Of a stretch of DNA of 64,000 nucleotides, positions 30,588 through 58,877 are shown piece after piece. The stretch's first letter is position 1. Each line of letters starts with the position of its first letter. The translations under genes and the position numbers were made by a program. A model generated the notes under the pieces. That model searched no databases. It was not told the origin of the DNA and worked only from the letters and a program-made list of their open reading frames with translations. Location of the stretch: sequence record PV764603.1; one strand, written 5' to 3'.

Positions 30588-30603
30588 GGGCCAAGGACGG
30601 CCC
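30588..30603 (+). promoter_or_regulatory. GGGCC-AAGGAC-GGCCC hairpin (CsrA/RsmA-type site)
   Basis: 5-bp stem with CANGGANG core; same 14-mer as 41475-41488. Confidence 0.6.
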
Positions 30604-41468: not shown

Positions 41469-41497
41469 GGATACGGCCAAGGACGGCCTCAATTTTA
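41467..41497 (+). promoter_or_regulatory. Tandem AAGGAT plus GGCC-AAGGAC-GGCC hairpin, followed by AATTTTA
   Basis: Seen directly in the leader of ORF 41522. Confidence 0.58.
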
Positions 41498-41521
41498 GGG
41501 TAGCCCTATAGAGAGTATGAC

Positions 41522-43207
41522 ATGCTACTCAACGGTACTCCGTTTAACTTTGTTCCATTCAACCAGCCCGAGTTGGCACCGTTGGGAGTTTTCATCAACG
41601 ATACCCAGCCGGTGCAAATGTCGGTGTCAGGCATTGGCTACCTGACAACCGCTATTATCCCGATTCAGGATAATCAGGCCATCCGCACCTCGACCACGTT
41701 CAAGTTGGTCATCCCGTATCACTTCACCACTGAATCTCCTGTTGTTGGTATCGGGCTGCTACAAGGCACTACCATCAACTACGGTTGGAAAATGCCCATT
41801 GCTGATCCGGTCCTTGGCGTCGGCCTGTTGCAGTACCCCAGCAACATCATTGGTCAGCACTTCGAGAGCCAAGGCGAAACGGGCATAGGCATCACGCAAG
41901 AAGCGACTGTTCGCATCAACTTCCACGAGGAAGCTGGATTCAGCGATTACGCCGTTGGTAAGCTGCAAATCTCTACAGTCAAGCTCGGCTACCGTGGCGA
42001 GTCTGACTACATGCAGGGCTATGGTATCACGCAGACTACATACACCTCTGTTGGTACGAACATTATCTCGTTTACGGGTGCTGGTCGCATCGTCACCAGT
42101 ATCGGGCCTGTGTTCGCCGTGTTCTATAGCGGTATCCGAATCTCTCCTGATCCAGCATTCGTTAAGCTGACCACTATCGAGGACCAACCCCGTGTTATCC
42201 TTGGTACGGTCACGCCGCGTAACCTTACTCCACGCATCCACACGTCCACCTCGTTCAGTGCGAGTCCGGTACTGTCTACGGTGCGGCCGCGCCTCAAGCC
42301 TTCGCATATCATCACGAAGGCCGAGGCCTCCGTCAAAATCTACAAGCGCCCTGAGCCTCTAATCATCGCTGCTTCCGCTGGTCAGCATAGCGTGATTACG
42401 AAGGCGGGTAATGTGGTGGTGCATCAGGCTACGCTCAAGCTTTCTCCCCAGCAAGCCCCTGCCATCGCCACTGCCCCCTCGGGCGGTACGTTCTTCACTA
42501 CAGCTATCGTCGAGCCTGCACCTGCAACGATGCACCTCAAGGCCCTGCGTGGTACGGAGTTCCAAGAAGTGGTTGTCGAAGGCGCTGCCTCCATGCAGAC
42601 CTCGGCTTCCGCTGAAATCAAGTGGGCTCCTTACATTGTAGACCAGCAAGTCACCGTCCAGACTAACGCAAACTTCGGTCTGTACGTTGGCTCCATCGTG
42701 GTTGATGTAGGTGTGATCCCCCCTGTCTCTATGAAGGTTGGGTTGGAAAAGGTGGTGCAGACCACGCTGACTATCGAAGACCACGTAACGTCCGCTACGT
42801 CGGCGTCGGGCGATGGCTTGATGGGAAGCATGGCGTTCTCTTACGAAGCGTCTGCGCAGGTATCGGTTGCTAACGATCCTGTGTTCCTGACTACGGCAGT
42901 TCTTAAGCCGGAGCCTGCTTCGATTACTACCAGTGCAGGTGGCCCCAAGATTCAGATGCCGCCCTTGGTTCTCGACAATGAGTTCCAAGGAAGCGTTCAA
43001 ACTGACTCCGAAGGCGATGTACTGCTCGGTACAATCAATGCAAGTTTCGTCTCTGCCAAGATCAAGACGACGGCCGAAGGTCAATTTAAGAGAGGAACGG
43101 CAAGCCCCTATAAGGGCGGTCCTGTTGTAGATACGGATGATCGACACATACTCAACGTTGAACCATTGAACAAACCCGGATTGAGAAGTATTAACATCCA
43201 GAACTAG
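41522..43207 (+). CDS. Beta-strand-repeat virion structural protein (fibre/baseplate-associated)
   Basis: MLLNGTPFNF..FN N-terminus and alternating hydrophobic/small repeats. Confidence 0.55.
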   Translation: MLLNGTPFNFVPFNQPELAPLGVFINDTQPVQMSVSGIGYLTTAIIPIQDNQAIRTSTTFKLVIPYHFTTESPVVGIGLLQGTTINYGWKMPIADPVLGVGLLQYPSNIIGQHFESQGETGIGITQEATVRINFHEEAGFSDYAVGKLQISTVKLGYRGESDYMQGYGITQTTYTSVGTNIISFTGAGRIVTSIGPVFAVFYSGIRISPDPAFVKLTTIEDQPRVILGTVTPRNLTPRIHTSTSFSASPVLSTVRPRLKPSHIITKAEASVKIYKRPEPLIIAASAGQHSVITKAGNVVVHQATLKLSPQQAPAIATAPSGGTFFTTAIVEPAPATMHLKALRGTEFQEVVVEGAASMQTSASAEIKWAPYIVDQQVTVQTNANFGLYVGSIVVDVGVIPPVSMKVGLEKVVQTTLTIEDHVTSATSASGDGLMGSMAFSYEASAQVSVANDPVFLTTAVLKPEPASITTSAGGPKIQMPPLVLDNEFQGSVQTDSEGDVLLGTINASFVSAKIKTTAEGQFKRGTASPYKGGPVVDTDDRHILNVEPLNKPGLRSINIQN

Positions 43208-43219
43208 GACCATTGACTC

Positions 43220-43948
43220 ATGCGCGGCATCTACATTTCGACCTTCGCTACACAGAAGACGCAGGACCGTCTTTCCTATCTTCTCGCGCAGGCAGCCTCC
43301 GCTGGCATTCCCGCCCTGCTTCCGAACGATATTCACGTCACCCTAGCGCACGATAGGGATACCTTGCACACGCCGCCGGAGTTGTCCGCAGAGTCCGATC
43401 CTCTGCGCATCTACACTGCACGTGTGTTGATGGTGGAGCAATGGGAAACCGGAAACGGCAATCCCATTCTCGTCGCTTCACTGTTCTGCCCTGAACTGCA
43501 CGAACGTTGGGAATACTGGCGATCCCTCGGGTTGGAGTGGGACTTCCCCACCTTCCGTCCACACTTCAGTCTCACCGACGGAATCAAGGGTATTCCGCGA
43601 AAGGATGTTGCCAAATGGTGCCGCATCTTCAACGAAGCCCTGCAAGATTTTGAGTTTGAATTCACCCACGAATACGTGCAATACATTCGTGCTGACGCCT
43701 TCAAGGACCCGACCGATGACGACGAGGAAGACCTTGACGGCGATGAGCATCCTGTAGAGTCGAGCACTTCGCACAAGACGAAAGGCGGTAAGAAGAGCAC
43801 CATCCTGCTTGAGGGAGTGCCTGTTCACCGGCCCAAGTTGAGTGACCATGAAGCTCGCAGCATGAAGAAGTTTGGCTTCAACGCACACGGTATCATGGAT
43901 CGTGTCCATGACCTAAGGAACGATGATGACGAAACCGAAGAAGAGTAA
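43220..43948 (+). CDS. Acb1-like (T4 57B-like) 2H phosphodiesterase, candidate anti-CBASS
   Basis: GIYIS, IHVTLAHDR and EQWETGNG..ILV.SL..PELHERW...RSLGLEWDFPTFRPHFSL parallel T4 Acb1 GLYVA, IHSTICYSR and EVWKTQDG..LV..L....L..RH...RALGATHDFDDYTPHITL; two HxT/S motifs. Confidence 0.8.
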   Translation: MRGIYISTFATQKTQDRLSYLLAQAASAGIPALLPNDIHVTLAHDRDTLHTPPELSAESDPLRIYTARVLMVEQWETGNGNPILVASLFCPELHERWEYWRSLGLEWDFPTFRPHFSLTDGIKGIPRKDVAKWCRIFNEALQDFEFEFTHEYVQYIRADAFKDPTDDDEEDLDGDEHPVESSTSHKTKGGKKSTILLEGVPVHRPKLSDHEARSMKKFGFNAHGIMDRVHDLRNDDDETEEE

Positions 43949-44723
43949 GCTCAAGAAAATTCCTCTTCTGCTGGGAACCGGAGAAGCACAGGTGAGTGCT
44001 TCTGCCTTCGACCTCGGGGCGCTTAAGCGCCCCGGGGTGGTAAAGAAGAAAAAGAAAAAGGAGGTTGTTGAGGAAGAACCTGTCAAGAAGAAGCGGAAGA
44101 AGAAATCGCAGGCCAATTTTGCTCCCGAAGAGAGTGCGATGGCTGAGGTGCGTGAACGCGCCGAGCAGCTACCTGCCTTGAAGCACCACGAACCCAACGA
44201 TCTTGAACTGCAAAAGCTGCGCGACGCTAAACGGTCTATGCGCAACCTTGAAGGCACGTTCAAGAAGTATTCACCCGAAGCTGCCATGCTTATCGAGCGT
44301 GAGCAGATCGGTAGTAGTGCACAGCTGATTCAGCGAGGCATGCTGATGATGCTGCTAGACAGTATCCCGATTGCAGAAGACGCGTACCACTCGCGTCCTA
44401 GCCAGAGTAATGCCATTGCCTTGCAGGCCCTAATCAATACGGGTCGAGACGTGCTGGCTGAAATCGAGCAAACCAACGACGGTACGGAACTTCTGTCTGC
44501 TCTCATGAACGAAGTGATGCTCCCCAACTTCCATGAGATTGCACACCACCTTGTTATGGCCCTGTTCCACCTACGTGAGCAGGTGCAGAACGTAGTGCCG
44601 GACAACATGCGGCGCGTGGTTGACGGAAAGTTCAACGACATTGCACAAGAGATCCGAGTCTACCTCAGTGAGAAATTCGTTGACCTGCGCGAGCGTACTA
44701 TGGAACGCTTGAAGGAAGGTTAA
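43923..44723 (+). CDS. Putative terminase small subunit (T4 gp16-like helical core) with Lys-rich N-terminus
   Basis: Helix pair MLMMLLDSIPIAEDAYHSRPSQSNAIALQALINTGRDVLAEI resembles the gp16 oligomerisation helices; adjacent HNH gene. Confidence 0.4.
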   Translation: MMTKPKKSKLKKIPLLLGTGEAQVSASAFDLGALKRPGVVKKKKKKEVVEEEPVKKKRKKKSQANFAPEESAMAEVRERAEQLPALKHHEPNDLELQKLRDAKRSMRNLEGTFKKYSPEAAMLIEREQIGSSAQLIQRGMLMMLLDSIPIAEDAYHSRPSQSNAIALQALINTGRDVLAEIEQTNDGTELLSALMNEVMLPNFHEIAHHLVMALFHLREQVQNVVPDNMRRVVDGKFNDIAQEIRVYLSEKFVDLRERTMERLKEG

Positions 44724-44725
44724 GT

Positions 44726-45100
44726 ATGCCCATACGGAAAACGGGAACGGTCAAGGTCAACCGCCGCTCTGGAGGAACCCATCGAATCGTTCGGGGCAAG
44801 TACACGGGCACTAAGGAAGGGTGGCGCTCCCTGTCGGACAAGATCAAGAAAAGAGACGGCTGGTGCTGCCGCAAATGTGGCAGGAACAAACTGGCTGTGC
44901 GCGCCCGAGGTGACTTCCTAGAGGTTGACCACATCATCCCGATTTCCAAGGGCGGCACTGATTCTCCCAGCAATCTATGGACGCTTTGTAGCACCTGCCA
45001 CGGAAAGCGTCCCGGCCATAAACACCTGCAAAAACGTAGGCAACCAAATGCGAATTCTCCAAAACCTGCGCCATACCGGATCGGCTCCTACTCAGGATAG
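44726..45100 (+). CDS. HNH endonuclease (HK97 gp74/McrA-like)
   Basis: W..L...IKKRDGWCCRKCG...LEVDHIIPISKGGTDSPSNLWTLCSTCHGKR. Confidence 0.92.
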   Translation: MPIRKTGTVKVNRRSGGTHRIVRGKYTGTKEGWRSLSDKIKKRDGWCCRKCGRNKLAVRARGDFLEVDHIIPISKGGTDSPSNLWTLCSTCHGKRPGHKHLQKRRQPNANSPKPAPYRIGSYSG

Positions 45101-45614
45101 CCCCGAAACTGCCTCCTTGCGCCGCCTCACCAATACTGTAAAGAAGGGGGAAGTGCAGAAAAACCCAATTTCGTCCAAGCGGCTAGAGGTTCTCTCCGGA
45201 GAGGCTCCAGTTGCTTTCGACGTTATCGAGCCTCCGGCATCTGACCTTACCCCGCTGCCTACTGTATATGGGCCGCCGGTCATCCCGGAAGGTGACGTGG
45301 TTCCTGTCTTCAAGAAGCGCAATCTTGCGAACGAGAATCGGAGAGAGATACGCCTGCTGAAAGAGCAGCTGCGTGACCTGTCTGAACCCTCCGAGGACGA
45401 ACAGCTTGATCGTATCCTCGACTGGCTCAGTTCCAAGAATCTGGATGACGGATTCAACTACGCGCAGACGTTCTACAACACCACGTTCCTTGAGAGTCTG
45501 GACAAGAGCTTCGCCATCCGACTCGCTCAGAACCTATACGCCATGTTCGCCAGTCAGGGGCGCGTTTACGCTCCGTGGGCGGACTTCGTTTCACATACTC
45601 CGGTGCTGGCATGA
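45048..45614 (+). CDS. Hypothetical protein (188 aa), putative processed head protein
   Basis: Start re-assigned to ATG 45048 (MRILQNL...PETASLRR); overlaps the HNH end by 53 nt. Confidence 0.6.
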   Translation: MRILQNLRHTGSAPTQDSPETASLRRLTNTVKKGEVQKNPISSKRLEVLSGEAPVAFDVIEPPASDLTPLPTVYGPPVIPEGDVVPVFKKRNLANENRREIRLLKEQLRDLSEPSEDEQLDRILDWLSSKNLDDGFNYAQTFYNTTFLESLDKSFAIRLAQNLYAMFASQGRVYAPWADFVSHTPVLA

Positions 45615-48600
45615 AAGAGATAGCGGCAACGCTGACTAACAACCCCATTGAACGTCCGGAAGGCATTGACGAAACTTACCTGTATCCGCTGCTGCATGAT
45701 GGCGAGGCGGTGCAGTCGGTCCTTGGCCTGCTGGTCGCCGGTTGGAAGGGCTACTTGGCGGAAAGCGCCAAGAAGACGGGTAAGTATGCAGTCAACCTTC
45801 TAGATCGTAAGGACCCCGATCGCAGCCTGTTCATGCCTGATGAAGACTATCTGGCAGACTTGGGCGAGAACATCGGTAGCATCGAAAACTCTGCGCGCGT
45901 GCAGGTGCGTCGTGAGGGTAAGGGCTTCACGCTTTCCTTCCCGATCCTTGCTATGCACAAGGAAGACTACAAGAACAACACGCTCTCCCCGACCTCCCTG
46001 AGCAACCTTGCCAAGACCTTTCCCGCTACGGGAGACACGGGTTCCGCGATGGTGTCTCATAGCTCGCCGGAGAGCTATCAGCATTTCTACGAACTGCTGA
46101 CCAAGGTGATCCCGAAGGCTTCGCAGGCTCAGTTCTTCAACCCTGCTGAACCCATCGACATTTTCATCCCGGTTGACGTGACCAAGGAACACATTGGTTA
46201 CACCCCGAAGCTGGAGGCGCAGTTCGTTAGCGCTGAAACTCTACGGGCTGCTGAGAAGTACATCAAGGGCTATCGTCTGATCGGCCCACCGATTCCTTCC
46301 CGTCATCAGTACCTTGGCGAACTGTCGGTTACGCACGACGACGAAGAGACTCGCTACACCCCGACGTCCATCAAGGACGTGGTTAACAAGGGTGACTACG
46401 CAACTTGGGTTGCGATGAATCGTGAAGTCTTTGTCTACGCCGATCTGCACCTGCCGGAAGACTTCGCCAAGTTTGTTGGCCAGAGCCACAATCCGTCGCC
46501 GTCCATGATCTTTGTGTGGTTCATGGCGTGGATGCGCTATTGGGTTGGCGACAGCGCGAACGCTCACGTTGAGGCCGTTCGGCCCATGTCGTCCATTCGT
46601 GACGAGAACCTGCATCGTCCGAACAAGCCCAAAGTCAACAAAGACGGCTTGATGATTTCCCCGGACGGGTACATCTACTACATCCCGACCGTGGATAACG
46701 TAGACCTGTACGAGCAGGCATTCCACGAATTTGTGGAACGCGACGGTGGCGTGTTCACTCTTGCGGACATGCGTAGCACGGTCAAGCCGACCAAGAAGCT
46801 GCCTGCCAACAAGCTGATCTACACCGATTGGGAGAACAACAAGATCGCCTACTCCAACTCGGATGGTTTGGTCAACATCCTGAATCTGGACGGCTATCAG
46901 CCTGTGACTTCTACGCAGGCCCGTAACTTCCTAGACCTGCCGATCATGAAGGTGCAGCAGCGCACTCGCGTCAAGCATCTGGCTTCGGTACTTACCTACA
47001 CCCTGCGCAACCGTGTGCCTGAGCGTCAGATCACGGATATGTCGGAGGAGACTCGCCGTGGGTTGGTCGCCCTGAACGTTAGCTCCCACCAAGTCGGGGG
47101 TGCCTACGTGAATGGCGAAGTCGGTCCGTTCATGGCCACCTTGGACAAGTCGGTCAAGGTGCTTGGCGAAATGTATGCACAGGCACCTAATAGCGTTCCT
47201 GCTTTGTTCCGTGACTACGCTGACACCTACGGTCACGAACTACAGGACGTGAAGTTCCACAACCTGTTCGACTTTGCGCCTATCAAGTGGATCGGTAACG
47301 CTCTGCAAGGTGCCTTCCAAGCAGTTTCCCCGTCGCTTGTTCTGGCCGAACACGCCAGCGAGCACGATCAGGAAGCCATCGTCAACTTTATCGAGTCGCG
47401 CTACCCACTGTCGGGCATGGAAGAACTAGGCACCCTCATCGCCCTAGTCAAGTACGGCACGAACTACCCGAAGATCGTTTCCTACGATCTGGCACGTCGC
47501 CGCCAGTACCTTGAGCCTGTGATTCCGGGCTATGACTGGCAGCCCAAGCCGCTTCCCTACGTCGCTGAGAACCGAGCCTTGATGCCGCATCAGGCACGCA
47601 TCGACGGCATCCTGACGCTGAACAAGCCGGACTGGACGATCCTTGACGTTGACGCTGGTGGTGGTAAGACGGGTATTGGCCTGCGCTACATCATCACCCT
47701 GTTGGAAGGCAAGGACGTGAAGCGGGCGTGCATTACTTGCCCCAGCTTCTTGGTGAAGAACTACATCGAAGAGAACGTGTACTTCTACGATGGCCGGATC
47801 AACATGATCGTCATCAGCACGGACACCCTCAACACCTACGGTGAGGATGGCCTGCGCACGATGATTGAGAACTCGCCTCCGAACACCATCCTGCTGACTG
47901 ACTTTGGGTTCCTGTCCAACCATCACCGCAACCGCGTCGTGTTCTACGGCAGCGGCGAAGTGACCATCAACCTCAATGCGGAATTCCTGACCACGCTGGG
48001 CATCGACTACATGATCGTAGACGAATCGCACGGCCTGCGCAACGAGGAAAGCAACAAGAGTCAAGCAGCCCGTAAGCTCGCCCTGACGATGGACAAGAAG
48101 GCCATCGCTACGGGTACGTTCATCAACAACCAAATCAGCGACACCGCTGGTCAGTTCGCCCTGTTTGACCCCTCGGTCTTTGGCAACAAGCAGGACTTCA
48201 TTGACGAATTCGCAGAAGTGATCGTCGGTGGCAAGGTGGTCAAGTGGAAGGACAACGCTGAGGCCGAGATTCGTAAGCGCATTGGCATGCAGTCGTGTCT
48301 CATCAGCGCACGTCGTAAGGAATGGGGCGCAATGCTTCCGCATCTACGCGAGAGCATCATCCCTATCTATCAGGACGAACTGAACCCTGATTGGGTCGCT
48401 GCGTATCAAGCCATTCTGGAAGAAACGATTGAGGCCATCAAGGCCAACAAGTCGTTGGTAAAGCAGCTGCAAGATGACAACGTAGACGAACTGGACTTGG
48501 CAGGTGCGCTGAATCCATACCTCGCACGCCTCGAAATGTTCATGACCGCTCCCGGGTCTGACCCGCTGGGCGCGAAGGTGCTAAAGGGTGACGCTGCTAT

Positions 48601-50482
48601 CGGTCCCAAGGTCAAGGTGGTGGCTCAGATTGTTGATGAGCACGTGACTGATCCGGAGGCTAAGGACGGCAAAATCCTCATCATCACGAACTACCATGCG
48701 TCCGCAGATGCGCTCTACAACAACCTGCCTGCGCACCTCAAGTCCAAGTTTATCCGCTACCATGCGGAGAACAAGGATCGGGATATCAGTAAGTTCAAGC
48801 GTGACCCAGACATCATCGGCATGATCGGTGTGGAAGACAGTCTCGGTACGGGCCACAACTTCCAGTTCTGCTCGCGCATCGTGCGTATCGAAACCAAGTG
48901 GAACCCCGGTGATCTGGAACAGGCCAACGCGCGTATCTGGCGCCCTGATCCGAAGAACATCGGCAGTGAAGCACGCACTGTGTTTATTGATTGGGTGGTG
49001 GTTGATCGCACCATCGACGTGTGCAAGTTTGCTCGTCTGATTTCCAAGGTTATTTCCAAGGTCAAGTTTGACGAAGCAGACAATCCGAAGTACGACGATC
49101 TGGAAGCGCTGCCGATCATCAAGATGAACCTTGACACGATCCGATCGCTCAACTCGATCACGAAGCATCTGGCCGCGTATCACCAAGAGTACACGACGTA
49201 CAAGAACATCTACAACAAGGAAATGAAGGAGTTCCGCGAGAAGCACAAGGATACCTTCAAGTTCAAGCCCATTGAGAACAGCGGTGAACCGCTGCCGGGC
49301 GGCGCAATGATGCGTCATATTACCTATGTCCCTGAAATGCACCTGCCGGATACCAAGCAACTTGGCATCGTGCGCTACTCCGACTATGTGGATTCCCACG
49401 CAGGCGAGAATCAGGGCATCGTTGACTTTGACACCGTAGGCAAGTACGTCCATACGGAATTCGGCGACGGCAAGATCATCGGCATGAGCGGCTCGACCCT
49501 AAAGGTCAAGCTGAAAGATGGAACTATCATCAAGAGCATCAACAAGCTCAAGACGTTCATCATCCCCGACAAGAAGACCTATGACGCTGACGGAGACACC
49601 ATCCGTGACCGCATGGCTCACTTGATCGGTGTGCCTATGAAGAAGGCGAAGAAGAAAAAGGAAGTGCCTGCCGAAGAAGCTCCGAAGCCTGTGCAGAAGG
49701 TCAAGCGACTCAAGACGGTTGAAGAACCTGTCGAAGAGAAGCCCAAGAAGGCCAAGAAGCAGGAAGAGGAAGCTCCTAAGCTGCGCACGCTCAAGCCTAA
49801 GAAGGCGCCGCCTGCCCCGAAGGTCAAGAAGAAGCCAGAGGTCGATGCTGAACTGGAGTTCTTTGTGGAGGTGGCCTACGATCAAGTCACCCTCGGTACG
49901 TACAAGGATGAGGCAGACGAAGATGAGGCCGCGGTTGGCGTGCTGGAGTCGCTTGGTTTCAAGGATACGGGTGCGTACTCCTTCGCTATCATCAAGACTC
50001 GGAAGCACTTGGTCAACTTCCTCGAAGTGCTGCAAAGTAAGTTCGTGGTGAAGCCGGACTTCCTTGAACGTCTGGAAGACCTGCAAGCTTTCTTCAACAA
50101 GGGACCGAAGAACGCATTCAACGCTCGCAGTGCGCTCAAGGCAATGGACGTGCGTAACTTCTGGCGCATGAAGCGAAACAAGGCGGGTGCCAACGAAGTC
50201 AGGCCGTATGCTGTCGTGCTCAACCACGAACTGCACATTGCCTTCGCGTTGTCTTCCAACCAGCCCGCAAATCGCAAGGTGGCACGTCAAGTGCGTGTAC
50301 CGGGCGTCAAGTGGGATTCCTCGGATGGCGATTACATCAAATTCCTGCCCAACAAGGGCGCTGTAACTTCCACCCTTTCCGAACTGTCCAAGGCAGGCAT
50401 CACCGTTGCCAACCTCAAGGACGTGAAGAAGGTACTCTCGGAGCTCAAGCTCCACACCCCAGCCAAGAAAGAAGAGGAGTAA
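45611..50482 (+). CDS. Giant SNF2-family (SF2) ATPase/helicase (1623 aa)
   Basis: LMPHQ, DVDAGGGKT, MIVDESH, ATGTFINN, SLGTGHNFQ, WNPGDLEQANARIWR; about 640-aa unknown N-terminus; SH3-like VHTEFGDGKI; K/P/E linker. Confidence 0.88.
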   Translation: MKEIAATLTNNPIERPEGIDETYLYPLLHDGEAVQSVLGLLVAGWKGYLAESAKKTGKYAVNLLDRKDPDRSLFMPDEDYLADLGENIGSIENSARVQVRREGKGFTLSFPILAMHKEDYKNNTLSPTSLSNLAKTFPATGDTGSAMVSHSSPESYQHFYELLTKVIPKASQAQFFNPAEPIDIFIPVDVTKEHIGYTPKLEAQFVSAETLRAAEKYIKGYRLIGPPIPSRHQYLGELSVTHDDEETRYTPTSIKDVVNKGDYATWVAMNREVFVYADLHLPEDFAKFVGQSHNPSPSMIFVWFMAWMRYWVGDSANAHVEAVRPMSSIRDENLHRPNKPKVNKDGLMISPDGYIYYIPTVDNVDLYEQAFHEFVERDGGVFTLADMRSTVKPTKKLPANKLIYTDWENNKIAYSNSDGLVNILNLDGYQPVTSTQARNFLDLPIMKVQQRTRVKHLASVLTYTLRNRVPERQITDMSEETRRGLVALNVSSHQVGGAYVNGEVGPFMATLDKSVKVLGEMYAQAPNSVPALFRDYADTYGHELQDVKFHNLFDFAPIKWIGNALQGAFQAVSPSLVLAEHASEHDQEAIVNFIESRYPLSGMEELGTLIALVKYGTNYPKIVSYDLARRRQYLEPVIPGYDWQPKPLPYVAENRALMPHQARIDGILTLNKPDWTILDVDAGGGKTGIGLRYIITLLEGKDVKRACITCPSFLVKNYIEENVYFYDGRINMIVISTDTLNTYGEDGLRTMIENSPPNTILLTDFGFLSNHHRNRVVFYGSGEVTINLNAEFLTTLGIDYMIVDESHGLRNEESNKSQAARKLALTMDKKAIATGTFINNQISDTAGQFALFDPSVFGNKQDFIDEFAEVIVGGKVVKWKDNAEAEIRKRIGMQSCLISARRKEWGAMLPHLRESIIPIYQDELNPDWVAAYQAILEETIEAIKANKSLVKQLQDDNVDELDLAGALNPYLARLEMFMTAPGSDPLGAKVLKGDAAIGPKVKVVAQIVDEHVTDPEAKDGKILIITNYHASADALYNNLPAHLKSKFIRYHAENKDRDISKFKRDPDIIGMIGVEDSLGTGHNFQFCSRIVRIETKWNPGDLEQANARIWRPDPKNIGSEARTVFIDWVVVDRTIDVCKFARLISKVISKVKFDEADNPKYDDLEALPIIKMNLDTIRSLNSITKHLAAYHQEYTTYKNIYNKEMKEFREKHKDTFKFKPIENSGEPLPGGAMMRHITYVPEMHLPDTKQLGIVRYSDYVDSHAGENQGIVDFDTVGKYVHTEFGDGKIIGMSGSTLKVKLKDGTIIKSINKLKTFIIPDKKTYDADGDTIRDRMAHLIGVPMKKAKKKKEVPAEEAPKPVQKVKRLKTVEEPVEEKPKKAKKQEEEAPKLRTLKPKKAPPAPKVKKKPEVDAELEFFVEVAYDQVTLGTYKDEADEDEAAVGVLESLGFKDTGAYSFAIIKTRKHLVNFLEVLQSKFVVKPDFLERLEDLQAFFNKGPKNAFNARSALKAMDVRNFWRMKRNKAGANEVRPYAVVLNHELHIAFALSSNQPANRKVARQVRVPGVKWDSSDGDYIKFLPNKGAVTSTLSELSKAGITVANLKDVKKVLSELKLHTPAKKEEE

Positions 50483-54314: not shown

Positions 54315-54862
54315 TTGCTCCAATGACTGTGCGCGTAGGGGATGAGGAATTCCCGATGCGCGACCTGTTTGCCAGTGAACAGTCGGTGTTTCAGCAGCAG
54401 ATTGATGCAGTTACCTCAGCGTTGCAGGTCACGGAATTCGACCTGCTGCGTCGAGCAGAGACTCTGTTCAATCAACGCTTGCAGCACCGATTCTCCAAAT
54501 CGCAGAACCTCAGCTACGAAAAGCGAGTGTACCCTGCTTTCGGTCCAGAAGAATTCATGAAAGTGGCTGCTACTGGCTGGGCTGACGCGGACAAATCCCT
54601 GTGGATGGAAGCCGCCCGGAGGGCTTACCTAAACGATGCCATCAATGCGCTCGGTGGGGTGAACTACTCCAACGTTCCGTGCCCGCACCCTGATCCATTC
54701 GTCACCTACACGCACGGCGCGAATACGGGCGGATGGTCTACCAACGGTGACCGGTACTGGACAGACTTCCACTGCAATGCGTGCGTCAAGAGTTGGCGCA
54801 TGGAGGGAACCTACAATCCGAATCGTCATTCGAGGTACGGCCTAGATGAAAGCGCAAATTAG
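54311..54862 (+). CDS. Hypothetical protein with C-terminal Zn-ribbon-like motif
   Basis: CPH...HCNAC; ATGA overlaps. Confidence 0.6.
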   Translation: MIAPMTVRVGDEEFPMRDLFASEQSVFQQQIDAVTSALQVTEFDLLRRAETLFNQRLQHRFSKSQNLSYEKRVYPAFGPEEFMKVAATGWADADKSLWMEAARRAYLNDAINALGGVNYSNVPCPHPDPFVTYTHGANTGGWSTNGDRYWTDFHCNACVKSWRMEGTYNPNRHSRYGLDESAN

Positions 54863-55745
54863 TGAGATTTTCTTGTCGGTAGAAGGTGAGGGTCCGCTGC
54901 TGGGATGCCCCATGTTGTTCATCAGAACTTGGAGTTGTAACCTGACGTGTCCGGGATTTGGTGGCCATGAAGGTAAGCAGCAGTACGAAGGCGCAGCTAC
55001 GTTGAATGATGTGGTGCCTGCTGCTACCGGGTGCGATAGTGCGTATGCGTGGCATCCTTCCTTCAAGAACCTTCGGCAGCCAATCACTGTCGAGGATATG
55101 GTGCAGCAGATCATCGCTGCGCTGCCGGGAGGCAAGTTCTTCTACCCAAGCGGTACTCCGATTGTCCTGTGCTGGACTGGCGGCGAGCCCCTCATGTGGC
55201 AGCCCTTCATTCAAGCAGTGATGACGCACCCGGATATGCCACCTGTGGATAGGGTGCTGTTTGAAACCAACGGTACACTGCTGTGGTCGATGGATCACAA
55301 CAACTGGTCGGGCTATCCCACTGTCCAACTCAGCATCAGCCCCAAGCTGACCAATAGCGGGGAGACATGGGAACGTCGGTACAAGTACAAGGCGTTGATG
55401 AGTTACGTTGAGCACGTTCCGGCTAACGATATTTACCTCAAGTTCGTCAGCAATGGCAGTGAGGAATCCTTCGAGGAAATCAATCGTTGGCTGGATCAGG
55501 TCAAGACGGACGTGCACGCACAGATGGACATTGCGGGCATTGATGAAGAACACGAAATGTACGATGACTTCCACACGCACATGCACGACCGCAGGATACT
55601 GCCTGTGTACGTGATGCCGGAGGGAGTCTACAAGGAACAATGCAGGGAGGTGCAAGGCAAGGTTGTGCAAATGTGCATGCAGCACGGGTACAACTTCACC
55701 CCACGCGCTCATCTTGAACTATTTTCAGAGCTAATTGGGACTTAG
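54846..55745 (+). CDS. queE: 7-carboxy-7-deazaguanine synthase (radical SAM, QueE-like)
   Basis: ISEIFLSVEGEG..LG.PMLFIR..SCNLTC...GCDSAYAW, WTGGEPL, FETNGT, SISPKL, YLKFV, VYVMPEG, FTPRAH. Confidence 0.85.
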   Translation: MKAQISEIFLSVEGEGPLLGCPMLFIRTWSCNLTCPGFGGHEGKQQYEGAATLNDVVPAATGCDSAYAWHPSFKNLRQPITVEDMVQQIIAALPGGKFFYPSGTPIVLCWTGGEPLMWQPFIQAVMTHPDMPPVDRVLFETNGTLLWSMDHNNWSGYPTVQLSISPKLTNSGETWERRYKYKALMSYVEHVPANDIYLKFVSNGSEESFEEINRWLDQVKTDVHAQMDIAGIDEEHEMYDDFHTHMHDRRILPVYVMPEGVYKEQCREVQGKVVQMCMQHGYNFTPRAHLELFSELIGT

Positions 55746-55746
55746 T

Positions 55747-56235
55747 ATGAAGCTGTCAATGATCGCCGCCGTGTCGAAGAACGATTGGGTTATCGGGCAG
55801 GATGGCCAGTTGCCTTGGCATATCCCCTCGGACCTTGAGTTCTTCAAGGAGTACACGCAGGGTAAGACCGTAATCATGGGTAGGCGCACGGCTCAAAGCC
55901 TGCGCCGTGCATTGCCCAAGCGAACCAACGTCGTTATCTCTTCGGGGTACGAACGCGAAGGATTCACTACGGTCCGTAACTTCCTTGCAGCCTTAGATGC
56001 CGTCCCTGCTGGTCAAGACGCAGTGATTATCGGTGGCCATCACGTATACGCCACCGCGATGCCTGTAGTGTCAGAAGTGTGCATCAGTTGGGTCCACCAC
56101 GTCCGTCCGTCCGCTCCGGATGCTTTCTTCCCTGACACCTTCCGTGACTTCAAATGGAAGGCTATCTCCGAAGAACTCATTCGAGACACGCGTGACGAAT
56201 TCCCATATACTCGGACGATCTACCGCAAGGTGTGA
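55747..56235 (+). CDS. folA: Dihydrofolate reductase
   Basis: MIAAVS.N.VIG.DGQLPWHIPSDLEFFK..T.GK.VIMGRRT..SL..ALP.R.NVVIS; IIGG..VY. Confidence 0.95.
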   Translation: MKLSMIAAVSKNDWVIGQDGQLPWHIPSDLEFFKEYTQGKTVIMGRRTAQSLRRALPKRTNVVISSGYEREGFTTVRNFLAALDAVPAGQDAVIIGGHHVYATAMPVVSEVCISWVHHVRPSAPDAFFPDTFRDFKWKAISEELIRDTRDEFPYTRTIYRKV

Positions 56236-56240
56236 CTAAT

Positions 56241-56699
56241 ATGACCAAAGTTATCTGTGGATTCCCCGGCATAGGCAAGTCCACTGTAGTTAAGGAAAGC
56301 AAAGACCATGGGTTGAAACTGCTCGATAGTGACAGCAGCGCCTTCCCGAAAGATGCCTTCCCTGAGAACTACATTAATCACATTAAAGAGAAGACTTCCG
56401 ATGGATACACCATCCTAGCCTCTTCTCACGATAGTGTGCGCAATGCGCTCACGGAAGCGGGCATACCCTTTGTCATCTTCATGCCCCATGTAAGTGCCTT
56501 AGACGAGTACGTGCGCCGGTATAGGAAACGGGGAAGCCCCGAAAGCTTCATCAATACAGTAAGTTCTAACTGGCGAAAGTGGTTAGAGGGTTGCGCAGAA
56601 CAAGGTGGGACTTGTATCGGTAAGGTCATACTTCCCGGCAACTATTACCTTAGTCTTGACCTTATTCGACAAGCTGGTATTAGCATCAATAAACTGTAA
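56241..56699 (+). CDS. Small P-loop nucleotide-kinase-like protein
   Basis: VICGFPGIGKST Walker A, LDSDSS, kinase-like lid EYVRRYRKRG. Confidence 0.7.
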   Translation: MTKVICGFPGIGKSTVVKESKDHGLKLLDSDSSAFPKDAFPENYINHIKEKTSDGYTILASSHDSVRNALTEAGIPFVIFMPHVSALDEYVRRYRKRGSPESFINTVSSNWRKWLEGCAEQGGTCIGKVILPGNYYLSLDLIRQAGISINKL

Positions 56700-56729
56700 A
56701 TATAGATACACGCAATAACTGGAGAAGTC

Positions 56730-57797
56730 ATGCAGGCTACCGTCGGTGTAAAAGAACTCACCAAAGCAATCTCGCAAGTAAAGAACCTGACTGGCGCGGA
56801 ACACATCAGCATGATCGCGGACCCCGCTGGTCTGCATGTGTGCGCGGCTGGTAATGGTGTCAACGTGTCACTGACGCTTGAAGCCGAAGTGCGTAACAAT
56901 GGCAAGGTCACTCTGGATCACCTGCTGCTGTCGGGTGTCATCAAGGGACGCAAGAAGGTCGAAATGACCTTGAAGTCCAGCGACCTGAGCTTCAAGGAAG
57001 TGGATGGTCGGAAGTACAGCGGCAACATCGTTGTGCTGCCGTTTGAAGACGTGATGGTCAACGACGCGTCGAGCAAGCCGATCAAGATCAGTTCGGACGC
57101 ACAGGCTACCCTGAATCAGGCGGTGGAACTGGTCGGCCTGACCAACATCTACACTGATGATCCGATGTATGTGTGGGTCATCAGCACGAAGAAGGCGACT
57201 ACGGTTACTTGCTTCGATGACTTCCACATGGCGCACTACCACAACCCGAGTATGTCGCTGGGTCAAGTGGAGTTCCAGCTGTCTCTCGCCACGTTCAAGA
57301 CGCTCAACACCCTTAGCAACGGCAAGAGCTACAAGCTGGAATTGAACGATGGTACGCTGACGGCATACAACGATGCGTTCAAGGCCAACATGCCGCTGAC
57401 GCAGAGTGAATCGTCGCTGACCCCGGATCAGGTGAAGCAGCTGCTGTCGAATCTCAAGACCGATGGTTACTTCGAGGTTGAGCGCGATACCTTCCAGACC
57501 ATTCTGGAGAACGCCGCTAGTGCGTATGAAGGCAACAATACCCCGCTGACCATTTCGTCCAACGCCAAGAAGAAGCTGGAACTGGCGATCAAGGGCAACT
57601 ACGTCAACATGCGGGAAGTGCTGCCGAACAAGCACAAGATCAAGAAGCCGCTACAGCTGGACCCGTCCCTGATGCTGGACATTATGGAGCATGTGGAAGC
57701 CAAGGAAGTGAAGGTGGAAATCGTCACCGACAAGTCGCTGTTCATTCGTCAAGAGCTTGGTGCTGCTACCGTCGTGTACGCGGGCTCCCTTATCTAA
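56730..57797 (+). CDS. DNA sliding clamp (beta-clamp/DnaN-like)
   Basis: 355 aa, three similar alpha/beta units (L..AI..V; TL.QAV..V; F..IL..A); in the replication cluster. Confidence 0.65.
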   Translation: MQATVGVKELTKAISQVKNLTGAEHISMIADPAGLHVCAAGNGVNVSLTLEAEVRNNGKVTLDHLLLSGVIKGRKKVEMTLKSSDLSFKEVDGRKYSGNIVVLPFEDVMVNDASSKPIKISSDAQATLNQAVELVGLTNIYTDDPMYVWVISTKKATTVTCFDDFHMAHYHNPSMSLGQVEFQLSLATFKTLNTLSNGKSYKLELNDGTLTAYNDAFKANMPLTQSESSLTPDQVKQLLSNLKTDGYFEVERDTFQTILENAASAYEGNNTPLTISSNAKKKLELAIKGNYVNMREVLPNKHKIKKPLQLDPSLMLDIMEHVEAKEVKVEIVTDKSLFIRQELGAATVVYAGSLI

Positions 57798-57798
57798 G

Positions 57799-58200
57799 AT
57801 GATAGACCTGTCAGTTGCTACATTCCAAACTGACTGCTTCTATAGGATCGGTGCTTACTACGTCCTCCTTAACGTACCTTGCGCGCTACCTGTCCACGTC
57901 CAACCCAGCCCGCATTTGCAGCTGGGTTGGGTTCGTGTGAATACGCTGCACCTCGGTGAAGGCGGGATGCAGGTAGGGTATGCCATCGAGGCTACGGGTA
58001 AGGTAAAGCGAGACACCTATTTCCTTTTGGCGGCTAGAAAGTCAGTAGCTAAGGTTCCGATCAAGGAACTAGAGAAGCAGAAAGGATACCCGGAGCTACG
58101 TTACAAGCTACCCGGCATCAAGATTCTGACCACACCCCATACAGTGCTTTTCCTGAGCACAAAACCTTTAGACATTACGGAACATTTGGACAACCCATGA
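57799..58200 (+). CDS. Hypothetical protein (133 aa)
   Basis: Starts 1 nt after the clamp stop; ATGA overlap with folE. Confidence 0.55.
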   Translation: MIDLSVATFQTDCFYRIGAYYVLLNVPCALPVHVQPSPHLQLGWVRVNTLHLGEGGMQVGYAIEATGKVKRDTYFLLAARKSVAKVPIKELEKQKGYPELRYKLPGIKILTTPHTVLFLSTKPLDITEHLDNP

Positions 58201-58877
58201 GCAAGACTCTTGCTGGAATTCCAGCTACGAAGGAACAGTTGAAGGATGCGTACACGGTGATCGTCAATCACCTGCGCAGTAACACCAAGAATCCGGAACT
58301 GCTGGCGAATTTTGTTGGCACCGAAGATCGCGCTGTACGCGCTCTGATTGAAACCTGTCTGAGCGATGATGAAATCTCCAAGCTGCTCGCTCCGATCGTG
58401 GCTGTGGAATTCCCGGTCAGCCGTCATAAGCCCAAGGCACGTGGTCAGCGTGTCCCCGCCGGTTCCGTTACTCAGGGCCCGATCACTGTCAACTCCTGCT
58501 GCCCGCACCACCTGATGCCGGTTCGATACCATGCACACGTGGCGTACATTCCGGGTGACAATGGCGGCGTGCTTGGGCTGTCCAAGCTTGCTCGCATCTG
58601 CAAGCTGCTGGGTCGCCGCCCCGTCCTGCAAGAACAGCTTGCCGAAGACATTGCGGATGTGCTGTCTCTGACTAACGGCGAAGGCGCATTCCCCTCCCTC
58701 GCAAGTGCTGGCGCGGCTGTGTCACTGGTCGGTATGCACACCTGCATGGCCTGCCGTGGCGTTGAAGAGAACGCGCTCACCTCGGTCACTGCTCTGCGCG
58801 GCGACTATTGGGAGCCTGAAATGGAACAGAAGTTCCAGAACTCGGTGCAAGGTATCAAGACCACCAATCTGCGGTGA
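58197..58877 (+). CDS. folE: GTP cyclohydrolase I
   Basis: VNSCCPHHLMPV...HVAYIP...VLGLSKLARI...GRRPVLQEQLAEDIAD.L...HTCMACRGV. Confidence 0.92.
   Translation: MSKTLAGIPATKEQLKDAYTVIVNHLRSNTKNPELLANFVGTEDRAVRALIETCLSDDEISKLLAPIVAVEFPVSRHKPKARGQRVPAGSVTQGPITVNSCCPHHLMPVRYHAHVAYIPGDNGGVLGLSKLARICKLLGRRPVLQEQLAEDIADVLSLTNGEGAFPSLASAGAAVSLVGMHTCMACRGVEENALTSVTALRGDYWEPEMEQKFQNSVQGIKTTNLR

Follow-up and report, generated by a model that had tools for sequence, protein, structure and literature searches.

Acb1 is the founding anti-CBASS nuclease; it cleaves adenosine-containing 3′3′ cyclic di- and trinucleotides and shields phage from CBASS. Variation among its relatives is explained in the field by the specificity of the core together with a short terminal lid. 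In T4 Acb1, H44, T46, H113 and T115 form the catalytic tetrad, Y12, W74, F107 and W147 are the stacking aromatics, E141 reads adenine N6, and residues 145–152 make up a C-terminal lid (Hobbs et al., PMC9117128). Its activity is present from about 15 min of infection, in step with the late onset of CBASS (PMC9117128). In T4-type phages such as RB27 (L021 362–1422; also L007, L008), the acb1 homologue 57B is flanked by 57A, which encodes the tail-fibre chaperone, and by ipI, which encodes an internal virion protein, and a homologue of FBB1 Acb1 is found in about 1,460 phage records (T4-like, adjoining 57A), many of which are labelled 'RNA ligase'.

Among 2H phosphodiesterases at large, enzymes with an intact site vary widely in substrate and some cleave no nucleotide tried; specificity is located in the core, and the lids are modular, either N- or C-terminal, and required for activity (Doherty et al., 10.1101/2025.08.21.671373). 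That a lid is a movable, exchangeable module is shown by 2H PDE-9 of the Burkholderia phage BCSR5 (9Q2G/9Q2Y), in which it is formed by the first 15 residues (10.1101/2025.08.21.671373). Multidomain phage 2H phosphodiesterases (13/75, Doherty et al.) provide a precedent for cores fused to further sequence.

Here we analyse an Acb1-like gene within a 64,000-nucleotide stretch of phage DNA, the whole of which is called the window below. Like Acb1 (T4 57B; FBB1 7T26/7T27), its product belongs to the same family, has the pair of His-x-Thr/Ser motifs and the three core stacking aromatics, and is extended past the last strand at the C-terminus rather than at the N-terminus. Unlike Acb1 (about 152 aa), it is 242 aa long, has an extra predicted helix, a Gln for the adenine-reading Glu and an Ala with an adjacent Phe at the lid Trp column, and adds a predicted disordered linker and a Leu...Gly-Phe-Asn motif that are absent in 84 tail-less relatives. 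It matches 2H PDE-9, of the Acb1 structural group, equally well in predicted structure, whereas only four residues stand at the N-terminal position of the PDE-9 lid and the additional sequence is C-terminal. With LigT and other 2′,3′-cyclic nucleotide phosphodiesterases (PF02834; 5LDM, 1FSI) it shares the 2H fold and the His-x-Thr/Ser chemistry, but it stays under the Pfam cut-off of that family (18 vs 23.3 bits) with a TM score of about 0.55. While the multidomain 2H phosphodiesterases carry recognisable domains (hydrolases, proteases, acetyltransferases and others), the window protein carries a leash and a 21-residue peptide.

An unbroken Acb1-like gene in a Xanthomonas jumbo phage

The window is, at 100% identity, the last 64 kb of PhiXhv-16 (PV764603.1), a 229-kb jumbo myovirus of X. 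hortorum pv. vitians, of which four near-identical isolates (PhiXhv-12, PhiXhv-15, Ep026 and Ep032) were found. A sequence-only reading of this DNA had pointed out an ORF with both 2H motifs, and the ORF was recovered with an ATG start and both motifs in place. The parts of the gene are as follows.

43220–43948, + strand: whole gene, Acb1-like 2H phosphodiesterase with a C-terminal extension; 242 aa plus stop, Pfam Acb1 above the cut-off
43220–43705, + strand: catalytic core, residues 1–162, 2H fold (profile, PDB match and predicted fold)
43334–43342, + strand: first catalytic motif, His39-Val-Thr41 (T4-type H44/T46); His and Thr in 14/14 tail-bearing relatives
43562–43570, + strand: second catalytic motif, His115-Phe-Ser117 (T4-type H113/T115), placed by alignment
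43706–43822, + strand: predicted disordered linker, residues 163–201, an acidic block (163–178) followed by a polar, mildly basic part (pLDDT, identity and charges)
43823–43885, + strand: conserved tail motif, residues 202–222, predicted amphipathic helix (alignment and AlphaFold2 model)
43886–43945, + strand: post-motif segment and acidic C-terminus, residues 223–242, kept in close relatives only

The ORF is unbroken across the five isolate genomes, with a protein identity of at least 99.6%. Its GenBank product (XYR93614.1) is labelled 'hypothetical protein', and neither Acb1 nor CBASS is named in the paper describing PhiXhv-16. The GC and GC3 contents of the gene are those of the neighbouring genes, and horizontal acquisition, which had been considered as an origin, was rejected on this agreement.

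The core is assigned to the Acb1 family

Residues 1–125 had been read as following T4 Acb1 motif by motif, and this likeness proved to be far above chance. The Pfam profile PF23474 (Acb1) matched the window protein with 61.3 bits against a gathering cut-off of 27 (E 1.1e-16), spanning residues 2–125 and profile positions 1–115 of 144 and ending at residue 125, and the sole significant PDB sequence match was 7T26 (FBB1 Acb1; E 8.6e-7). The match of PHROG 755, which carries the label 'RNA ligase', extended over residues 2–160. LigT_PEase (PF02834) scored 18.0 bits, under its cut-off of 23.3, on one 30-residue stretch only.

A comparison of predicted structure with Acb1, which the same reading had proposed, gave a concordant outcome. 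An AlphaFold2 model was built from a 99-sequence alignment for P0001, which is the window protein but for one linker residue, and residues 1–~160 were modelled with pLDDT >90. The top solved structures found by Foldseek were 7t27 and 7t26 (E 2.5e-9 and 4.5e-9; target-normalised TM 0.68–0.73), and the BCSR5 phosphodiesterase structures 9q2y/9q2g reached TM 0.70–0.73; plant CPDase and LigT (TM ~0.55), as well as Usb1, ranked below both. The best matches in BFVD were phage proteins of 142–196 aa; many of them bear the name Acb1, with TM up to 0.83, and several are encoded by jumbo phages. The model also has, at residues 127–141 in the segment 126–145, an additional helix that FBB1 Acb1 is without. 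On profile, sequence and predicted fold, we firmly assign residues 1–162 as an Acb1-type 2H phosphodiesterase.

Catalytic tetrad and core aromatics are kept, and C-terminal contacts appear to differ

A profile search over 1.84 billion representatives returned 128 relatives at E ≤ 1e-3, and a comparable C-terminal extension was observed in about ten clusters (P0004, P0007–P0013, P0015 and P0016). The family comparison set comprised 15 such tail-bearers and 84 tail-less relatives, and identity statistics were calculated on 14 tail-bearers. The Tequatrovirus protein RB27 57B (152 aa) was used as the numbering reference because all of the cited T4 residues sit at the cited T4 positions in it. Besides the two catalytic motifs, the T4-type residues correspond to the window protein as follows.

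T4-type Y12: Y5
T4-type W74: W75
T4-type F107: F109
T4-type E141: Q154
T4-type W147: A160, with F161 adjacent

The window protein has the full catalytic tetrad (H39, T41, H115 and S117), the change from Thr to Ser being conservative. The His115 column is invariant in 99/99 family sequences, residue 117 is Ser in seven and Thr in seven of the 14 tail-bearers, and the tetrad of the 84 tail-less relatives reads HTHT in 76 and HTHS in 7. The core base-stacking aromatics, Y5, W75 and F109, are all kept; among tail-bearers the Y5 and W75 columns are conserved in 14/14, and the F109 column is always aromatic (F10/Y3/W1). Altogether, five of the seven mapped T4-type residues are kept in 14/14 tail-bearers, the other two being the F109 and S117 columns. 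Since the tetrad and the three aromatics are conserved, catalytic chemistry and pocket core appear to be retained, and both C-terminal substrate contacts appear to differ.

The first of these contacts is the E141 column, which holds Glu in 52/84 tail-less relatives and Q6/E3/K2/D2/N1/H1 in the 15 tail-bearers, an assignment that depends on the alignment. The adenine-reading Glu is a specificity determinant and, judged from these columns, is not universal within the family. Because it is a Gln in the window protein and variable across the subfamily, the substrate range is probably unlike that of T4 Acb1. At the second contact, the lid Trp is either shifted or replaced: an aromatic residue occurs 4–14 residues past the conserved Glu in 13/15 tail-bearers, F161 being the one in the window protein. 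In tail-less relatives the C-terminus is reached a median of 8 residues past the conserved Glu, and the window protein goes on for 81 residues beyond the lid position. At the other end, only four residues precede the first-strand Tyr (Y5), leaving no N-terminal lid, and this stretch measures ~4 residues in the tail-bearers vs a median of 15 in the tail-less relatives.

The tail carries a motif that is better conserved than the core

A tail beyond the length of Acb1 had been noticed from the letters, and the comparison upholds it: FBB1 Acb1, the Acj61 protein and the T4-type RB27 57B have 152–154 aa and end at the lid. The description of this tail as acidic and then basic is right as to composition, with 10 D/E and no K/R in residues 163–178, 11 K/R and 5 H in residues 179–233, and 7 D/E in residues 234–242. 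It does not capture what is conserved, as the acidic run is lineage-specific. The linker, 20–56 residues long across tail-bearers, is acidic in close relatives only and net-basic in distant ones, and the conserved element is the motif at residues 202–222.

Mean pairwise identity among the 14 tail-bearers is 47.6% for the motif, 33.9% for the core, 26.0% for the linker and 25.7% for the post-motif segment. L207, G219, F220 and N221 are invariant (14/14), followed by E211 (13/14) and P205 (12/14), and a Gly-Phe-Asn after the core is present in 15/15 tail-bearers vs 0/84 others. In the AlphaFold2 model, the linker has a pLDDT below 50–60, and the motif is modelled at 78–86 with a helix at residues 209–218 that ends at Gly219-Phe220-Asn221. 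The motif also has the largest helical hydrophobic moment within the tail. By these alignment-based measures, the tail is more than low complexity, and its motif is under stronger constraint than the core.

No match to the tail was found in Pfam, NCBIfam or PHROGs, a word-indexed search with residues 190–242 returned only the query, and we did not find such an extension of Acb1 described in the literature. A tail-motif HMM was run against the ORFs of the 229-kb genome in all six frames and matched this gene alone. Because the HMM matches only the Acb1-like gene genome-wide, the tail does not appear to be a signal common to phage proteins, and the idea of a packaging or targeting signal carried by several of them was rejected.

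The tail-bearers are related through their cores

The tail HMM also recognised L017, which had been found via its neighbour gene and lay outside the training set, with an E of 1e-10; scans of IMG/VR yielded tail-less relatives only. A neighbour-joining tree, made to see whether the tail has a single origin, groups 13/14 tail-bearers, with a negligible bootstrap of 2/200, and an HMM of the core only ranks distant tail-bearers 1, 2, 4, 5, 9, 10 and 13 of 92. According to this core-only HMM, tail-bearers are closer to one another than to most tail-less proteins. The tail is missing altogether from P0014, a relative that is close in its core. Among the tail-bearers, P0013 (374 aa, L015 2083–3207) continues for ~120 residues past the motif; in this addition the core HMM finds a second, partial match with its first ~35 positions, possibly a partial internal duplication.

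The gene stands at the boundary of the tail-fibre and replication modules

Immediately around the gene, the following features were defined.

41475–41488, + strand: short GC hairpin within the 53 nt that separate the 561-aa gene from the last tail-fibre gene; an identical 14-mer stands ahead of the head-tail connector gene
41522–43207, + strand: upstream 561-aa gene without family match, kept upstream in close relatives only
43923–44723, + strand: downstream neighbour, 266 aa, overlapping the Acb1-like gene by 26 nt

The Acb1-like gene is preceded by three tail-fibre genes (Peptidase_S74 chaperone domains and a gp34-like trimerisation domain) and then the 561-aa gene, and downstream the 266-aa gene is followed by an HNH endonuclease, a 188-aa gene, an SNF2 helicase and a DNA polymerase. 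The gene had been placed among structural genes, which holds for the tail-fibre genes on its upstream side and fails for the replication-type genes on the other; the locus is a tail-fibre/replication boundary, not the interior of a structural block. The synteny kept in distant relatives is that of the downstream side (266-aa gene, HNH endonuclease and SNF2 helicase), not of the upstream side.

The stop of the 561-aa gene stands 12 nt ahead of the Acb1-like start and overlaps the AGGA ribosome-binding site of the Acb1-like gene. Strong hairpin-plus-T terminators are located at ~37358 and ~51150, and the gap at 41469–41521 contains a 4-bp GC hairpin alone. Given the 12-nt spacing, the 26-nt overlap and terminators only at these two distant places, the gene is probably co-transcribed with genes on both sides, the fibre side and the helicase side. 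Sigma-70-like sites were rarer than by chance and none was usefully placed, and the intergenic gaps yielded no phage-specific promoter motif. The 14-base GC hairpin occurs exactly twice, at 30589–30602 and 41475–41488 (+), both intergenic, against 0.07 expected by chance, and a similar hairpin is found at the equivalent position in a relative, L005; the hairpin may serve weak termination, attenuation or processing.

The 266-aa protein is predicted to consist of a disordered, K-rich N-terminus of ~70 residues and an all-helical body with five long helices, in a model of poor quality (pLDDT 59.7), and no match to it was found in PDB, Pfam or PHROG. Its family was found only in this phage lineage, where it stands just before the HNH and giant SNF2 helicase genes (the downstream module is replaced in L002/L004). 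It lies directly after every tail-bearing gene with enough flanking sequence (the window, L002/3, L004, L005/6, L013, L014, L015 and L017). Homologues (partner-HMM E 6e-18 to 2e-49) also follow the tail-less P0014 and P0020 and P0030, which have different K/P-rich tails and lack the motif, and in L016 a homologue occurs without an adjacent Acb1-like gene. As the 266-aa gene accompanies tail-less and other-tailed relatives and once stands alone, the gene order appears to be lineage synteny; a specific tie between tail and 266-aa gene, considered as a candidate, was weakened by P0014, P0020 and P0030 keeping that gene.

Several other features of these regions were recorded. The 561-aa protein has reiterated short segments containing Gly-Ile/Leu-Gly. 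The HNH endonuclease gene (44726–45100) precedes the SNF2 helicase gene in all related contigs, and the SNF2-type helicase (~1,620 aa, 45611–50482, +) contains a long low-complexity stretch rich in K, P and E near the C-terminal third. In the related jumbo-phage contigs L002 (4002–5682) and L004 (5118–6239), 2OG-Fe(II) oxygenase genes stand in tandem, two or three of them, between the tail-fibre genes and the 575-aa gene preceding the Acb1-like gene, and PhiXhv-16 has one 2OG-Fe(II) oxygenase gene at another place in the tail module. A radical-SAM activating enzyme and a GTP cyclohydrolase are annotated at ~54846–58877 (+), downstream of the DNA polymerase, and a QueD-like gene occurs elsewhere in the PhiXhv-16 genome, a set that suggests a 7-deazaguanine DNA-modification pathway.

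Proposed function and alternative explanations

With a probability of roughly 60%, we read the gene product as an Acb1-type signal-degrading phosphodiesterase that bears a leash-tethered docking peptide, a reading drawn from sequence comparison and modelling. By homology and the conserved residues, the core would most likely bind small cyclic oligonucleotide immune signals between its stacking aromatics, and the two His-x-Thr/Ser motifs would open the 3′-5′ bond by metal-independent acid-base catalysis, as in T4 and FBB1 Acb1. CBASS is carried by Xanthomonas on mobile elements, and, if homology is a guide, cleavage of the signal would blunt CBASS-type signalling in the Xanthomonas host. The predicted disordered leash of 20–56 residues would present a helix-forming peptide with the invariant Leu...Gly-Phe-Asn, which may dock on a different macromolecule, so that the enzyme is localised or regulated, or back onto the enzyme's own pocket as a remote lid. 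Since the constraint on the peptide exceeds that on the core, the peptide most likely docks specifically and folds upon binding. A narrower version, in which the peptide would tether the signal-degrading nuclease to a specific macromolecule, either a virion- or DNA-associated component or a component of host signalling, we hold to be improbable; if true, the Acb1 family would have its first localised member, either an anti-CBASS enzyme that is delivered or one that breaks the signal down where it arises.

Whether the peptide closes the enzyme's own pocket has to be weighed against docking elsewhere. As a remote lid, the helix would dock on the core and Phe220 would stack on the bound base in place of the lid Trp, possibly with a broader range of signals. 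The lid Trp column is Ala160 in a region that varies among tail-bearers, while Phe220 is invariant; the N-terminal lid is absent from the tail-bearers; lids of 2H phosphodiesterases are modular, occur at either terminus and are needed for catalysis; and a pLDDT of 78–86 is high for a free peptide. Nevertheless, 13/15 tail-bearers keep the aromatic shortly after the Glu, so that a proximal lid may persist, a leash of up to 56 and at least 20 residues would be an odd design for a lid in cis, and P0014, so close in its core, does without a tail; we therefore consider a remote lid possible but rather unlikely. Docking of the tail on the product of the 266-aa gene, forming a two-protein unit, is suggested by the constant position of this gene behind tail-bearing genes, by the 26-nt overlap of the two, and by the intact pair in L002 and L004 despite the replaced downstream module. 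The presence of the 266-aa gene behind tail-less P0014 and other-tailed P0020 and P0030, and without any Acb1-like neighbour in L016, together with the poor model of the 266-aa protein, makes such a unit very improbable.

The sequence-only reading had inferred an anti-defence enzyme that is expressed late or packaged, so as to be present when capsid-associated triggers activate CBASS. Spelled out, such an enzyme would be made late, packed in the virion or bound to packaged DNA through its charged tail, and delivered with the genome. Three tail-fibre genes do lie upstream without a strong terminator between, K/R/P-rich tails occur in distant relatives and K-rich disordered stretches in the neighbour and the helicase, T4-type acb1 adjoins ipI, and phiKZ Tad1 has been described as injected (PMC13282480). 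But the motif is in no other protein of the 229-kb genome, the synteny of distant relatives is with HNH and helicase genes rather than virion genes, and cyclic nucleotides are diffusible and arise late, so that delivery at injection would be unnecessary. The idea is also less distinctive than it seemed, because T4 Acb1 is already late and T4-type acb1 genes stand beside tail-fibre and ipI genes, and on balance we regard packaging as a long shot. A LigT-like RNA 2′,3′-cyclic phosphodiesterase or an enzyme of RNA-end repair, whose charged tail would bind RNA, would agree with the common activity of the 2H superfamily on RNA ends, with the names 'RNA ligase' (PHROG 755 and many homologue records) and '2′,3′-cyclic phosphodiesterase' and with the nucleic-acid enzymes encoded downstream. 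It is set against the 18 bits of LigT_PEase, below 23.3, vs 61 bits for Acb1, the weaker LigT structures (E 5.7e-4, TM 0.55) and the retention of three base-stacking aromatics specific to the Acb1 pocket; moreover, the name 'RNA ligase' on 57B homologues is older than the Acb1 work, and the same family holds T4 Acb1. We thus give an RNA-end enzyme very little credence.

Implications

Since the family of the enzyme, the chemistry it performs and its late timing were known before, the finding is an incremental one. According to a 2026 review, Tad1 is the only anti-defence protein so far described from jumbo phages, and database records already name Acb1 homologues in several of them. A leash-tethered 21-residue peptide that outconserves the core would imply an undescribed layer, added to core specificity and the short terminal lid, in the form of docking, localisation or a remote lid. 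The PhiXhv jumbo phages are biocontrol candidates against lettuce leaf spot, and a likely counter-defence gene in their genomes would help to interpret their broad host range.
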